A DNA stretch of 64,000 nt, from the IMG/VR virus record IMGVR_UViG_3300050343_000191, positions 1 through 64,000 of that record. The stretch is one strand, 5' to 3'. Every line of letters begins with the position of its first letter. Position 1 is the first letter of the stretch. This document shows, piece after piece, positions 1,539-45,516 of this stretch. The position numbers were made by a program, and so were the translations under genes. The notes beneath the pieces were generated by a model that saw only the letters and a list, made by a program, of their open reading frames with translations, did not search any database and had not been told where the DNA came from.

Positions 1539-2269
1539 CGTGCTCTATCCCATGCACAGTGTGCTCTTTGTCCATCAGCAAGAACATAATGGAAGAAGAT
1601 TTGATGGTAATACTGCTCTGCTGCAGGAGTTTTACCAAACAGTTTCTTACTCTTCTTACCAGTAAAACCAGGCATCTTATCACGCCAGTGTGGTCTTTCA
1701 CATCCTTTATACAACAAACCATCACCAGGTTTGAGTGTCAGTGAACGGTTCTCACCAGGAACAAGAACAGTTGTCTTCTTCTTATCGGTATATGTATCAG
1801 GAGTTTTAATCCAGAAGGGCCAATCAGCATCCTTACCTTCTAGGTTAGTGCTGACATGAACTGATACAGAGATTTCACATGCATCACGATCTGCGTGCTT
1901 GGTTAATTCCTGTCCAGGAAAATAATATCTATCATAATAATAGGTATTATATAACTTACGACCAATGATTTCTTCTAGTTTTAGACGAATACCAGAGTGA
2001 ATCACACGATATTGTGGGTGCCAATAACGTGATGTCGAACCTTCTACCTGTTGTTCTACAGGAACATGATTAAAATGTTCTGGGTTCTTATCCCAATAGT
2101 TATACTGTCCTTTCTCTTCTGGGACTGGGTGATAAAGTTCTTCAGCATCCCAAAGGTCCTTTACAACCAGATATCCATTCTTATCAAAGGATTCATTACG
2201 AGTCCATGCAGTTCCAGTATTTTGCTTCTCTTGAAACAATAACTGCAGTTCGTTCATTTGTTCTGCCAT
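1535..2269 (-). CDS. 2OG-Fe(II) oxygenase-like protein
   Basis: ELTKHADRDACEISVSV, LKPGDGLLYKGCERPHWR, QIFFHYV motifs. Confidence 0.8.
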   Translation of the reverse strand: MAEQMNELQLLFQEKQNTGTAWTRNESFDKNGYLVVKDLWDAEELYHPVPEEKGQYNYWDKNPEHFNHVPVEQQVEGSTSRYWHPQYRVIHSGIRLKLEEIIGRKLYNTYYYDRYYFPGQELTKHADRDACEISVSVHVSTNLEGKDADWPFWIKTPDTYTDKKKTTVLVPGENRSLTLKPGDGLLYKGCERPHWRDKMPGFTGKKSKKLFGKTPAAEQYYHQIFFHYVLADGQRAHCAWDRAR

Positions 2270-21468: not shown

Positions 21469-23646
21469 TTATTCTCCTCCTAATGCTAGAATTAACGGTG
21501 TGACGTTTGCAAATAAACTCTTGGAATAGAAATTACCAGAAATAGTTCCAGTAACTTGATCAATCACAACACCCTCACCGATTCTGAAGTTACCTCCTTG
21601 GTCTGTGCTGGTATAGATTACTAATCCACCATTACGATTGTCAACTTCATTCTCTTGTATCATAACACCACCACGAGAAGGAAGTGATGAAACTGGATCA
21701 CATCCAGAACCAATATATTCAAACGAATGAGAAGAGGCGAGAACTCTACTTTGTTTGAAGAAAGGAACTGTAGTACCAATTCCTATAGAATATGGAAGGT
21801 TTTCGTTGAAAGTAACGGTAGAGATCCCAGCAGATATTGGTGTGGAAGACTTAACTGTATAGTATGTTGGAAGTAATTCTATTATAGCTGTTGCTGTATT
21901 TATTCCAACATCAGGAGCAGAAAATGTGACAGTAGGTACAGTCTCATATCCACGTCCACTTGATAAGATTTCAATATCAGTTACAAATCCATTCGTAACT
22001 GTAGGAACTGCAGTAGCAGCAATACCCCATATTTCAGATGGAGAATCAATCGCCATTGTTGGAGTAGAATTATATCCACTACCAGCATTAGTAATTGTTA
22101 CTTTTCCAACGGTATAATATAATTCATCAAAATATACAACCTGACCATCATAAGGTCTGACCACATTTAAATCTACATTTCCACCTTCAACATAAGTATG
22201 CTCCCTATCGTTAGGTCCTACGTGAACTGTGAATTGATTTGGTGCAGGAACAGACTTAATAGAAAATACATAACCATTATCTCCACTTGGGAAGTTAGAG
22301 ATTGTACTGATAGCAACTACACCACCAGAAACATAAGTATGAGAAATTGTTGAATGACCAACATTTACAACAAACTTATTGGAAGCAGGAACTGATGTCA
22401 CATCAAATACATGATTTGAAGCACCATTCCCCGCACCAGGTGCTGGTGGGAAAGTTCCATTTGATGCACCACCACCAGAATTACAGTTAAATGTAAAGTC
22501 TCTGAGTGTAGCAGCAATGCCAACAGTAAAATCGTGATTAGCAGAAGTGGTAACTGTCATCACACCACTCTGTGCATCATAGTCTGCTGCACTGACATTA
22601 TAGTCAGTTGTTCCTACTGAAGAGTCGCAGGTAAACTTAAGATTAGCGATGGTAACTGCAGCACCAACATTATATCCATGATTACTTACAGTAGTAATAG
22701 TTGTCAGACCAGTGACACCATCATAGACGGCATTGGTGACACTGATTGGATCTTCTCTATCTATATGAAGGGTAAAAACATCCGCATTGACTGCAGAGGT
22801 TACACTTATAATACCAGTAAACTGTCTCGGTCCTACACCATCAGCAACTAATCCAAAGTCACCAAATGAAGAGTTGGAGTTAGTAACATCACACTGACCG
22901 CCAGAACCACAGAAGATTGACTCTTCATTGTTAATGGTAAACAGTGAAACTAACTGTGCATAACCTTCATTTGTGATTGAACAACCGATGCCACACTGAT
23001 TATACTGTGTAAAGGAATCACAAACAAAACTCTTAAAAGGTCCAATAACATTATTACCATCAATCTTCATACCAATACTATTGGTGACAAAGTTTGTACA
23101 GTTCAAAAGATATGGTGATTGTCCAGAGTATCTGATTACATCTGGATCAAATGCTGCGATTGCCTTTCCATGATTCATCGTTCCTGTGAACGACATATCA
23201 CTGATTAAATTTCCAGGTGCTACGTGAAATAAATCTTGATCTGCGTTCTGAGGGACAACAGTAACTTCTCTGAGACTGTCTCCAACAATACTTACTTGAG
23301 GACCAACCTTGATTGGGTTATCCTCTACATAAGTTCCAGCACTAATTTTAACAATAGATCCTGCGATTGTTGAGGCGATGGAGACTGCTGCTTTGACTGT
23401 TGCTTTAGCATCGCCTGGTTTTTTACCCGTGTTGGTATCTTTTCCGTCTTTTGTGACATATAAAACATTCGTAATACTTGCGCCCGAACCGACTCTAACA
23501 ACGTCCGTTGCCAGACCTGCCCTCGCTCTGAGAGTATACAGTTCTGCATCATTTGTGTTAAGAGCTAATTCTCCTAACTGTAGATCTGCTACCTGTGGTA
23601 CCTTATTGGGTACGGCAGATCGTTTAATCCTAAACGGTGTCGCCAT
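21469..23646 (-). CDS. Virion structural/tail protein
   Basis: 725 aa; NVLYVTKDG..D beta-helix-like start, duplicated YD..xG.xTxTT..NH modules, GNFRIGEGVVIDQ tail motif. Confidence 0.75.
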   Translation of the reverse strand: MATPFRIKRSAVPNKVPQVADLQLGELALNTNDAELYTLRARAGLATDVVRVGSGASITNVLYVTKDGKDTNTGKKPGDAKATVKAAVSIASTIAGSIVKISAGTYVEDNPIKVGPQVSIVGDSLREVTVVPQNADQDLFHVAPGNLISDMSFTGTMNHGKAIAAFDPDVIRYSGQSPYLLNCTNFVTNSIGMKIDGNNVIGPFKSFVCDSFTQYNQCGIGCSITNEGYAQLVSLFTINNEESIFCGSGGQCDVTNSNSSFGDFGLVADGVGPRQFTGIISVTSAVNADVFTLHIDREDPISVTNAVYDGVTGLTTITTVSNHGYNVGAAVTIANLKFTCDSSVGTTDYNVSAADYDAQSGVMTVTTSANHDFTVGIAATLRDFTFNCNSGGGASNGTFPPAPGAGNGASNHVFDVTSVPASNKFVVNVGHSTISHTYVSGGVVAISTISNFPSGDNGYVFSIKSVPAPNQFTVHVGPNDREHTYVEGGNVDLNVVRPYDGQVVYFDELYYTVGKVTITNAGSGYNSTPTMAIDSPSEIWGIAATAVPTVTNGFVTDIEILSSGRGYETVPTVTFSAPDVGINTATAIIELLPTYYTVKSSTPISAGISTVTFNENLPYSIGIGTTVPFFKQSRVLASSHSFEYIGSGCDPVSSLPSRGGVMIQENEVDNRNGGLVIYTSTDQGGNFRIGEGVVIDQVTGTISGNFYSKSLFANVTPLILALGGE

Positions 23647-29149: not shown

Positions 29150-29270
29150 GATAAAAAAGTAAGATCATCAGGGAAATGATGGTTTTACTATTCCTGTATC
29201 ACCCTTAGATACAGGTATGAAAGACGTGATTTAGACACCCTATAGGTCTTGGTTTGCGGGGTGTTACGAA
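29150..29270 (-). ncRNA. Structured psbA leader, probable PhotoRC-II-type cis-regulatory RNA
   Basis: About 160-nt leader with CCTGTATC/GATACAGG and CATCA/TGATG hairpins and AAACCAAGACCTATAGGGTGTCTAAA; position and look match my recollection of phage psbA leader motifs. Confidence 0.6.
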
Positions 29271-29307
29271 CAGTTAAGAAATGTGTTGGTTTCTTAACCT
29301 CTCGACT

Positions 29308-43550: not shown

Positions 43551-43577
43551 AAAAAAGGATGGTCTTTCAACCATCCT
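43551..43577 (-). terminator. Intrinsic terminator directly upstream of a start codon
   Basis: AGGATGGT/ACCATCCT stem plus T6, 2 nt before the ATG at 43548. Confidence 0.75.
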
Positions 43578-43760
43578 ACCATAGGTCTTTACATGCACGC
43601 CACTTGTTCTTTGACAGGAAACAAGAAACCTGGCGGGAGTAACCCATCCGCACCACCTCGTTTTAGGAACGAGGAAACCAAAAAGGGTCTAATGACTCCA
43701 CCACCTAGTTTTTAAAACTAGGAAACTTCGGGATTGAAGGGGATCCTTCACCGACCAGGG
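43578..43760 (-). ncRNA. Multi-hairpin cis-regulatory RNA, manA/wcaG-motif-like
   Basis: Three GTTTC-hairpin-GTGGYG units with compensatory stem changes; lies upstream of gmd/fcl(wcaG). Confidence 0.7.
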
Positions 43761-44042
43761 CTAGTTTTGAGACGATACCGAGTCTGTAACATAACAAGGA
43801 ACACCATCTGGATCTAACCATTTAGGATATTCTGGGTCTTCAATAGCAAGAAGCAGCTGATCTCCATTATCAAACAAATAGATGTCAGAGTACTTCTTAG
43901 TATATTCATTTGCTTTCTGCAAACGAAAATCTGGATTACCATTGAGTTGAATATAACCTCTCTGCACAAAACGATAAGGAAACCTCTCGTGAATGACAGT
44001 AGTCTTTGTTGAAGCAACAGACTTAGGATCTAGATCGTTCAT
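43761..44042 (-). CDS. Hypothetical protein
   Basis: 93 aa ORF, ATGA-coupled to the upstream gene. Confidence 0.65.
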   Translation of the reverse strand: MNDLDPKSVASTKTTVIHERFPYRFVQRGYIQLNGNPDFRLQKANEYTKKYSDIYLFDNGDQLLLAIEDPEYPKWLDPDGVPCYVTDSVSSQN

Positions 44043-44707
44043 GAATGTAAAATTTGAGTTGATTCTATATTATCAGATTGGAGTGCTGTCCAGATATCGT
44101 TTGTGACAATATTTGGATCGACATACCAGTCTTCAAATGCGTGTCCACAGTTTTTGACGTTTGATGCAACCAGTTGGTAGTTATTGCTTTGGAAGATATT
44201 GCGAGACTCTTCCATAACATCTATACTACCCTGATATGCATCTGTCTCAAAAGTAACAACAGAAAATCTATAAGATTCCAAATCAATTTTTTTCAAAGCA
44301 GCAAGAGATTGATACGAAGGATCAATATCTACTTGCAAATAGTCAATTTGATTTGGTAAATTATTCTCTTCAAAAACCTTAGAATAGTTTACTTGAGTTG
44401 CATCAGTACAGATACACTTGTTCAACCTTTTACTATTATAAAAGTTTGCTAAATCAGTATTGATTTCAAAAGAAACTCCAGACCAATTAAAAACACTTTC
44501 AAGAAGATAAGTATTATTAATATTAGTCGGATGTGCTCCACCTATTTCAACATAGGTTCCACTCTCTTTACCGTTTAGCATTGTAAGAACGAAAATATCC
44601 TGCAGTGCTTGAGAGTAGTTTTGGTCTACCCGCTCAACACCATTGAAAGATACTTTCAACTGACTAGAAATAAATTCTTGTCTGCTGACTGTTGAAAAGT
44701 CATCCAT
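44039..44707 (-). CDS. FkbM-like methyltransferase
   Basis: GTYVEIGG...NNTYLLE...WSGVSFE...IDYLQVDID. Confidence 0.75.
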   Translation of the reverse strand: MDDFSTVSRQEFISSQLKVSFNGVERVDQNYSQALQDIFVLTMLNGKESGTYVEIGGAHPTNINNTYLLESVFNWSGVSFEINTDLANFYNSKRLNKCICTDATQVNYSKVFEENNLPNQIDYLQVDIDPSYQSLAALKKIDLESYRFSVVTFETDAYQGSIDVMEESRNIFQSNNYQLVASNVKNCGHAFEDWYVDPNIVTNDIWTALQSDNIESTQILHS

Positions 44708-44922
44708 TCAACCAACCTCAACAGTTTCAAGATCATTGTAAATGAGTTCCATCAACATTTCATAATCATCAAGTGGTTCTCCTGAAAACACCGCTCCAGA
44801 TTTTCGTAGAAGCGGCGTACCTTTTTGAAAAGTTTCGGATTCTTTACATCAAGGAAAATTTCGCCAGCGGCAGCAGCACGGAGAGTGCTGATGTCCTTTT
44901 TGAATTTTTCAGTCAGTGCCAT
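44708..44922 (-). pseudogene. Small hypothetical gene with 1-nt deletion in an A run at about 44801
   Basis: MALTEKFKKDISTLRAAAAGEIFLDVKNPKLFKKVRRFYE then shifted SGAVFSGEPLDDYEMLMELIYNDLETVEVG*. Confidence 0.6.
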
Positions 44923-44945: not shown

Positions 44946-44974
44946 ATTATAAGGTTTTATCTATATGTAGTCAA
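44946..44974 (-). promoter_or_regulatory. Sigma70-type promoter
   Basis: TTGACT-17-TATAAT. Confidence 0.7.
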
Positions 44975-44977
44975 GGT

Positions 44978-45072
44978 GCCAGTGGTTATACTGGCAGTTG
45001 AATGGTAGATTCCTATCGCCGCTACTTCTGAACCTACCAAAGGAAAGCACCGCAGTTGTTACAAGAACAACA
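44978..45072 (-). ncRNA. Candidate small structured RNA (possible H-type pseudoknot)
   Basis: No ORF; GTTGTT/AACAAC hairpin, GGTAGGTTC/GAATCTACC stem, TGCCAGT/ACTGGCA hairpin; own promoter upstream. Confidence 0.5.
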
Positions 45073-45077
45073 TAAGT

Positions 45078-45106
45078 ACTATAACACTACTTGTGATGAC
45101 TGTCAA
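45078..45106 (-). promoter_or_regulatory. Sigma70-type promoter
   Basis: TTGACA-17-TATAGT immediately upstream of the candidate RNA. Confidence 0.65.
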
Positions 45107-45256
45107 ATGGTGCCCAATGTTGCCAACCGTATTTGTGAACTAGTGCATACCGATAATAGGCACAAAAACCAATGCAAGACTGAGTGTTCCAATTCCAAAA
45201 GGATTATTGAGTGTGGCAGCAGCAAAGTGTGCTGCCTTGAGTGCGATGTGGGTCAT
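45087..45256 (-). pseudogene. Small membrane protein gene with 1-nt deletion at about 45145
   Basis: MTHIALKAAHFAAATLNNPFGIGTLSLALVFVPIIGM; adding one base restores LVHKYGWQHWAPFDSHHK*. Confidence 0.55.
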
Positions 45257-45516
45257 ACGTATCCTCCCCAGATTTTCCAAAGATCTAAAAAGTAAAAGTT
45301 AATCTCACTTATAGTTCCTGAGGAATGATTCTTGCCCCTCAGTTTCAGCCCACTTCTTACAAAATCTAGAAAATCAGGTGAACTCATTACGTAATTTACC
45401 CCATACATTCTAGCGAATGCACTCATAGCAAAATCATAACGTCCTTTAATGTGCTGTTCCATTTCCATCATAGTCATCACTTTCGTAGTAGAAATTCTCA
45501 CCCCTATAAAGTCCAA
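45253..45516 (-). CDS. Hypothetical protein
   Basis: ORF with MEQHIKGRYDFAMSAFARMYG; start uncertain. Confidence 0.55.
   Translation of the reverse strand: MDFIGVRISTTKVMTMMEMEQHIKGRYDFAMSAFARMYGVNYVMSSPDFLDFVRSGLKLRGKNHSSGTISEINFYFLDLWKIWGGYV

Follow-up and report, generated by a model that had tools for sequence, protein, structure and literature searches.

We have identified a widespread RNA family of T4-like cyanophages (Kyanoviridae and uncultured relatives) in which a sigma-70-type promoter is followed almost at once by a hairpin and an H-type pseudoknot supported by compensatory base changes. The family was recognised from a single copy on the minus strand of a 64,000-nucleotide stretch of viral DNA (hereafter the window), the first 64 kb of a 231-kb record rated complete. 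An earlier note, made from the sequence alone, had described this copy as a promoter-driven small RNA without an open reading frame (ORF) and with a possible H-type pseudoknot, and had proposed an early phage small RNA, a riboswitch-like element or a ribozyme. The observation itself is correct in every detail, and the comparative data presented here make it much stronger. The interpretation is only partly supported, because the element is a promoter-driven, ORF-free structured RNA with a true pseudoknot that belongs to no Rfam family, but the reading as a self-contained small RNA is not supported. The domain, to which we can as yet assign no function, lies usually either at the head of a tRNA cluster or just before one of many unrelated genes, and it is best regarded as a leader or processed RNA domain that does not depend on what follows it.

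Features of the element in the window

The window belongs to a T4-like cyanophage; it carries wcaG and PhotoRC-II RNAs and five tRNAs, and the neighbours of the element match cyanomyovirus genes. Every feature that the earlier note had listed was found on the minus strand: the two promoters, the two simple hairpins, the 9-bp helix between GGTAGGTTC and GAATCTACC, and the crossing helix between TGCTTT and GAAGTA (Table 1). Both promoters match the consensus at 11 of 12 positions, and the first is the second-best promoter-like site in 4.5 kb. The only ORFs across the element encode 27 and 29 amino acids and are not conserved, and a small-ORF reading was rejected because the short and long forms of the family differ by indels of 1-2 nt and stops appear in the window's frames. 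Taken alone, however, the single sequence is not convincing: the nested minimum-free-energy fold, which cannot show the knot, is not significant (z = -1.55), and promoter-like sites overall are no more frequent than in shuffled sequence. It is the comparative evidence that puts the element beyond chance.

Table 1. Features of the element and its surroundings in the window (numbers after letters in the sequence column are positions in the conserved domain)
Feature	Coordinates	Strand	Sequence or description
Upstream small membrane-protein gene (phrog_1184)	45087-45280	-	1-nt deletion near 45141-45145
Sigma-70-type (early-type) promoter	45078-45106	-	-35 TTGACA 45106-45101; 17-nt spacer with extended -10 TG 45086-45085; -10 TATAGT 45083-45078; expected start about 45071
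P0, 5'-terminal hairpin	45055-45071	-	GUUGUU / loop CUUGU / AACAAC; last pair uses C1 of the conserved CUGCGG
Linker	45053-45054	-	U2 G3
Stem 1, 5' strand	45044-45052	-	C4 G5 G6 U G C U U U; pairs with 45028-45020 (UGCUUU 45049-45044 with GAAGUA 45028-45023)
Loop 1	45039-45043	-	CCUUU; U45039 may instead pair with A45003
Stem 2, 5' strand	45030-45038	-	GGUAGGUUC; pairs with 45012-45004
Unpaired A between the stems	45029	-	A
Stem 1, 3' strand	45020-45028	-	G A A G U A G32 C33 G34
Loop 3	45013-45019	-	GCGAUAG
Stem 2, 3' strand	45004-45012	-	GAAUCUACC; end of the conserved domain
Optional downstream hairpin	44977-44996	-	UGCCAGU / AUAACC / ACUGGCA; no U run
Second promoter (next gene)	44946-44974	-	TTGACT-17-TATAAT
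Next gene (phrog_552, MALTEKFKK...)	44708-44922	-	ATG at 44922; frameshifted near 44797-44801
222-aa ORF	44039-44707	-	no Pfam or PHROG match
wcaG RNA with terminator-like hairpin plus U run	43556-43682	-	93.7 bits; hairpin plus U run 43577-43556
PhotoRC-II RNA	29180-29276	-	80.1 bits
Weak second match to the motif model	21584-21634	+	13.6 bits

The downstream hairpin was not listed by a terminator scan. It is confined to one sub-lineage, being present in five of the sequences compared here (L006, L018, L021, L012 and L032; L numbers denote individual sequences in our comparison) and absent in the S-SKS1 type, and conservation of the family stops at the end of stem 2. The second promoter, in contrast, is conserved together with the next gene in S-SKS1, S-SCSM2R and L076, a viral contig. 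The weak second match in the window, which shares CUG..GU.ACCUCCUUGGU...ACCAUU with the motif, is probably due to chance.

Distribution of the family

A blastn search of deposited phage genomes found the core of about 55 nt, in stretches with no annotated feature, in S-SKS1, ACG-2014f, SynMITS9220M01 and S-SCSM2R. A second query added S-SM2, Bellamy, S-B43, RB11-B, S-H68 and S-B05, and a covariance model added P-SSM2, so that the family is represented in about 10 cultured cyanomyovirus lineages. Pattern scans of IMG/VR gave at least about 280 instances in marine viral contigs, amounting to 173 distinct core sequences and 230-241 distinct contexts. Their flanking genes (nrdB, gnd, hsp20, purM, DNA polymerase and small cyanophage-only ORFs) place them all in cyanomyoviruses, including a low-GC P-SSM2-like lineage. 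The model found one copy in each of nine phage genomes, whereas contig L076 holds two (559-611 and 1733-1785, minus strand). In the deposited records that we examined the motif has no feature of its own, and several place a hypothetical protein over it or leave the region blank.

A model search of 151 sampled cyanobacterial genomes found nothing convincing: the best hit scored 26 bits, and the hits inspected lay inside protein-coding sequence (e.g., a MacB/FtsX-like gene) and were judged to be chance matches. A pattern scan of bacterial genomes was uninformative about hosts, in that all 120 matches were chance hits in GC-rich coding DNA, where about 110 were expected by chance for 19 fixed bases in 596 Gb. 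In marine RNA libraries, contigs carry the core (45003-45043) joined to the flanks of other phages. Because only assembled contigs were examined, these data show presence but give no transcript ends, strand or level, and DNA carry-over cannot be excluded; direct evidence of stability or of any activity is likewise lacking. In contigs from two of these libraries, 44041/44042 is joined directly to 44708/44713, so that the 222-aa ORF represents a gene-sized insertion/deletion difference between related phages.

The earlier note could not assign the element to a known family, and our searches agree with this. No Rfam 15 family (including glnA, Downstream-peptide, SAM-II, SAM-V, preQ1-I/II/III, HDV-like, pistol, hatchet, twister, manA, wcaG and abiF) overlaps the element at gathering thresholds. 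With permissive filters and E up to 10, the stretch of the window gave only two chance hits to eukaryotic families, neither covering the knot, and four other members with flanks gave nothing over the motif at E up to 5. No paper searched names the motif and the exact conserved string occurs in none of the searched texts, although a prior listing among bulk candidates is not excluded, since half of the supplements of Weinberg et al. 2010 (PMC2864571) and all of those of Fremin 2023 were not covered. We therefore regard the family as new, but as an orphan structured RNA of cyanophages it stands alongside manA, wcaG and PhotoRC-II.

Covariation supports both helices

Does the pseudoknot hold across these relatives? 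The earlier note had stated that homologs failing to preserve the two stems would overturn its proposal; when this was examined, the stems proved to be kept through many compensatory changes. On 44 ungapped short-form sequences, both helices pair in 100% of cells and 10 of 14 pairs show changes on both sides. On a 99-sequence alignment, 99.4% of cells pair and 12 of 20 pairs are compensatory (7 of 8 in stem 1 and 5 of 12 in stem 2); none of 500 shuffles reaches this, and sliding the partners by 1-3 columns reduces pairing to 31-49%. Because this alignment was fitted to stem 2 only, stem 1 constitutes an independent test; R-scape was not applied. The 3' strand of stem 1 lies between the two strands of stem 2, so that the element satisfies the definition of an H-type pseudoknot with both helices supported by covariation. 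Many G-U pairs, which would be A-C mismatches on the other strand, show that the RNA is read from the strand carrying the promoter.

Stem 1 is longer than had been recognised, comprising nine positions (4-12 with 26-34). All six inner pairs show compensatory changes, as does the additional pair formed by position 5 of the conserved CUGCGG and position 33 of GCGGCGAUAG. Among distinct sequences, this pair is G-C in the 115 with G5 (114 of them GCGG, the one GCAG variant changing position 34 and not 33), U-A in 45 (CUGCUG with GAGG in 44, and CUGCUC with GAGG in one) and U-G in 6 (CUGCUC with GGGG), without exception, and position 5 had been left free in the scan that forced position 33 to differ from C. 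Position 6 faces G32 as G, A or C, and is therefore a purine-purine mismatch or a C-G pair, whereas C4-G34 is fixed apart from one sequence. An alternative register, in which CUGC pairs with GCGG with a 2-nt bulge, was considered and replaced by the register supported by the 5-33 covariation. In stem 2, which is 8-10 bp long, the distal pairs vary freely but the three junction-proximal pairs (U-A, U-A, C-G) never vary.

In contrast to the stems, the loops are nearly invariant, and about 20 unpaired nucleotides are conserved. The linker U2 G3 and the single A between the stems are invariant in all 99 aligned sequences, and positions 1-4 showed no variation in scans that left them unconstrained. 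The CCUU of loop 1 is invariant, its last position being U or C, and loop 1 lengthens with stem 2; in loop 3 the only natural variants seen are at G37 (to U, as in P-SSM2, or to A) and U39 (to C, as in S-SM2, or to A). Parts of the loops were fixed by our search patterns, so that their invariance is partly imposed, but the isolate hits from blastn and the model, which carry no such constraint, agree with it. We read loop 1 as a pyrimidine loop crossing the deep groove of stem 2 and contacting the invariant pairs as a triple helix, with loop 3 running along the shallow groove of stem 1, although this arrangement is an inference. The 5' hairpin P0 is also real: a compact hairpin of 5 bp or more closing exactly at C1 is present in 119 of 212 unique upstream contexts, against 11 of 212 after shuffling, with 53 different stem/loop combinations and frequent GAAA or GAGA loops.

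Genomic context

A sigma-70-like or extended -10 promoter precedes the motif in 191 of 241 unique contexts, with the end of the -10 box mostly 19-22 nt before C1, and P0 therefore begins within a few nucleotides of the expected start. About 20% of the copies have no promoter within 80 nt and lie inside longer transcripts. In close relatives of the window's copy, the -35 box and spacer lie inside the 3' end of the upstream small ORF. This gene is cut short in the window by its 1-nt deletion, whereas L021, L056, L006 and L018 read on through ...IIGMHLVHKYGWQHWAPFDSHHK to the stop codon, so that the last ~17 codons overlap the -35 box and spacer. The next gene is likewise frameshifted in the window, and relatives and RNA-library contigs carry one extra base there and give an intact protein of 71-73 aa; two 1-nt deletions within 400 nt suggest assembly errors in this record, or real decay.

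Downstream of the knot, 118 of 230 distinct contexts (51%) have a tRNA starting 2-6 nt (mostly 3-4 nt) after stem 2: tRNA-Arg(UCU) in 90, tRNA-Pro(UGG) in 26 and others in 2. On L076 and in S-SM2 these are the first tRNAs of two sub-clusters. On L076, one copy follows an ORF end and heads tRNA-Arg-Gly-Asn-Val, and the other, which has no nearby promoter, heads tRNA-Pro, followed by a VapB-like antitoxin gene. Of the other 112 contexts, 100 have a same-strand ORF starting within 150 nt, from more than 35 unrelated families and mostly 13-33 nt away. Judged by their N-terminal sequences, which were not scanned against families, these include PstS-, PurM-, deformylase- and gp32-like genes, a VapB-like antitoxin and many unknowns, and in 14 of them, as in the window, the ORF sits behind its own promoter. 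In the window itself the nearest tRNA lies 1.7 kb upstream of the element on the same strand and a promoter follows instead, so that membership of a phage tRNA array, although evident for about half of the family, is left undecided for the element as such.

None of the 230 contexts has a terminator-like hairpin plus U run within 70 nt of the knot. The RNA always runs on into a tRNA, an ORF or the next promoter, and an independently terminated small RNA gene, with a promoter and a terminator of its own, is thus not what we observe. The tRNA linkage, the extension of stem 1 and the near-invariant loops could not have been seen from the single sequence available to the earlier note, and our data do not choose among its three proposals, a small RNA, a riboswitch-like element or a ribozyme.

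Possible functions

How might such a domain act? The fold, its covariation, the strand, the promoter association, the absence of terminators and the mixed downstream genes are established by the comparison, but what follows on function is inference. We consider that host RNA polymerase makes the element early, as the first ~70 nt of a transcript, and that it is an autonomously folding leader whose action does not depend on its cargo. A function that serves tRNAs and mRNAs equally must act on transcription or on the survival or processing of the RNA, or else belong to the detached domain, and we tentatively favour action in cis, at less than even confidence. One route would be shielding the 5' end from 5'-end-dependent decay by host RNase E or J; RNase E is induced during cyanophage infection (PMC2518516). 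The other would be to make the polymerase that transcribed it processive, as the put RNAs of phage HK022 do. Where a tRNA follows, RNase P cleavage would also detach the domain as a compact RNA of about 70 nt (the knot plus the short spacer), so that a role after release is not excluded. Several points weigh against action in cis. One or two copies per genome is odd for a general expression aid, the near-invariant unpaired nucleotides are more than a mere stabiliser needs and point to a specific partner, which would also fit a released trans-acting RNA, an aptamer or a catalyst, the next gene in the window, having its own promoter, does not need the leader for its expression, and the copies without a promoter within 80 nt lie inside longer transcripts. 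Cyanobacteria lack Rho, which removes one classic reason for antitermination on untranslated RNA. The put RNAs are about 70 nt long, lie just downstream of early promoters in one or two copies per genome, act whatever genes follow and have no terminator of their own, and the motif shares these genomic features. However, put consists of two stem-loops and not a pseudoknot, there is no sequence relation, and it is unclear which terminators would need to be read through; read-through was not assayed here.

The main alternative, which we consider unlikely but do not exclude, is a stable RNA acting in trans. It would be made at the head of a tRNA array and cut free by RNase P at the tRNA 5' end, or by RNase E in the AU-rich spacer before ORFs, and the released RNA would then bind a conserved host or phage protein through its invariant loops as a decoy, sponge or cofactor, an anti-defence decoy being one candidate. 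This view is favoured by the low copy number, the near-invariant loops, the second promoter in the window, the frequent VapB-like antitoxin neighbour, and a spacing to the tRNA that matches the tRNA-to-tRNA spacing in the same arrays. Moreover, in S-B43, S-H68 and ACG-2014f the order is motif, tRNA-Arg, manA RNA, tRNA, with gaps of 0-3 nt, so that these arrays do carry structured RNAs other than tRNAs. The manA RNA (Rfam RF01745; L260 and L261, 1254-1616; L003, 1557-1915), listed as a cis-regulatory riboswitch candidate, there sits between two tRNAs with gaps of 0-1 nt and looks like a structured RNA cut out of a tRNA array rather than a 5' UTR element. T4 also keeps two stable RNAs of unknown role, rnaC and rnaD (species 1 and 2), packed against its tRNA-Arg; these lie downstream rather than upstream of that tRNA, are 119-139 nt long and show no homology to the motif (best 12.5 bits, inside a tRNA). 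Against action in trans, no copy has a terminator, half of the copies sit 13-33 nt before an ORF with no evident release site, and no partner is known.

A riboswitch-like aptamer, in which a triple-helix-type pseudoknot would bind a small molecule reporting host state and tune whatever lies downstream, appears improbable. Variable stems with invariant loops and junction are typical of aptamers, and the H-type knot with a pyrimidine loop over invariant U-A, U-A and C-G pairs recalls the SAM-II, SAM-V and preQ1-II folds, with conserved loops lying in the helix grooves; the local strings GUUCA and AGGAAC recall P1 of the glutamine riboswitch, which is no more than a lead. Cyanophages carry the orphan riboswitch candidates wcaG, PhotoRC-II and manA nearby, and some of the downstream genes are metabolic (the PstS-, PurM- and deformylase-like genes). 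However, the cargo is extremely mixed and half of it is tRNA, which argues against a gene-specific riboswitch; no terminator follows, no ribosome-binding site lies inside the knot or its 3' strand, and the distance to start codons is too long and too variable for a conserved expression platform. None of the models of these riboswitches matches at E up to 10, and the criteria for a riboswitch are thus not fulfilled, although ligand binding was not assayed.

A self-cleaving ribozyme trimming the transcript next to the tRNA or ORF is less likely still. The core is compact, pseudoknotted and rich in invariant nucleotides, and small ribozymes are common in phages, where some (the theta, HDV-like ribozymes) flank phage tRNAs. 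However, the topology is a plain two-stem knot in which only two helices cross, a single A takes the place of P3/L3 and 7 nt take the place of P4, so that the P3/L3/P1.1 core of HDV-like ribozymes is lacking, as are the parts of known small ribozymes. No ribozyme model of Rfam matches, even at E up to 10 (self-cleavage was not examined), and the motif lies 5' of the tRNA, where RNase P already cuts.

Least likely of all is a function as DNA only, such as a mobile promoter cassette or recombination hotspot of the PeSL (promoter-early stem-loop) type that shuffles genes in T4-type phages. The same promoter-plus-motif unit does occur before more than 35 unrelated genes, and in the low-GC lineage a terminator hairpin precedes it, as in PeSL cassettes. 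However, DNA homology alone does not produce compensatory changes in two crossing helices, and a recombination site would conserve the stems as sequence, whereas here the stems vary and the loops do not.

The T4 gene 32 mRNA leader also contains an H-type pseudoknot at the 5' end of a T4-type phage transcript, followed by an AU-rich unstructured spacer, and that leader also stabilises mRNA. However, a gp32-like gene follows the motif in only 2 of 230 contexts (L042 and L085) and not in the window, there is no sequence similarity, and half of the copies precede tRNAs, where translational repression has no meaning; the motif is therefore not a gene 32 translational operator. The manA, wcaG and PhotoRC-II RNAs (PMC2864571) occur in the same phages and genome neighbourhood, are found mainly in marine sequence, have covariation-supported folds and unknown function, and precede mixed genes. 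There is no sequence or model similarity to them, and the present motif is a simple hairpin plus H-type knot fixed at the expected transcript start without a terminator platform. The wcaG RNA of the window, which lies 1.3 kb downstream of the element, is followed at once by a terminator-like hairpin plus U run and then by a 273-aa ORF with no family match, which is a plausible riboswitch-style platform.

T4-like cyanophages are among the most abundant viruses in the ocean, and how they control early expression and make their tRNAs is poorly known. The family described here is clean and testable, with a defined fold and cultured carriers (S-SM2, P-SSM2, S-SKS1, ACG-2014f and S-SCSM2R). It is not excluded, although we think it unlikely, that the domain represents a new functional class of phage RNA used by a large fraction of ocean cyanomyoviruses: either a cargo-independent leader acting directly on the host transcription or RNA-decay machinery, as a put-like polymerase modifier or a bacterial counterpart of exonuclease-resistant RNAs, or a new aptamer or ribozyme class governing the maturation of phage tRNA arrays. 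Together with the manA RNA wedged between tRNAs, the position of the motif at the heads of tRNA clusters suggests that these arrays are mixed operons of structured RNAs cut apart by tRNA-processing enzymes.

The comparison also bears on existing annotation. A small gene annotated as VapB46 antitoxin in S-SCSM2R (MEFYSVEYWQKNWE...; L001, 1703-1966) recurs right after the motif, or after the motif plus tRNA-Pro, in L054, L070, L079, L103 and L113, and in S-SCSM2R its annotated start overlaps the tRNA. In S-SM2 (L259, GU071095.1), the tRNA coordinates in the GenBank table lie about 55 nt downstream of where ARAGORN and Rfam place the same tRNAs, and several hypothetical proteins are annotated over tRNAs.
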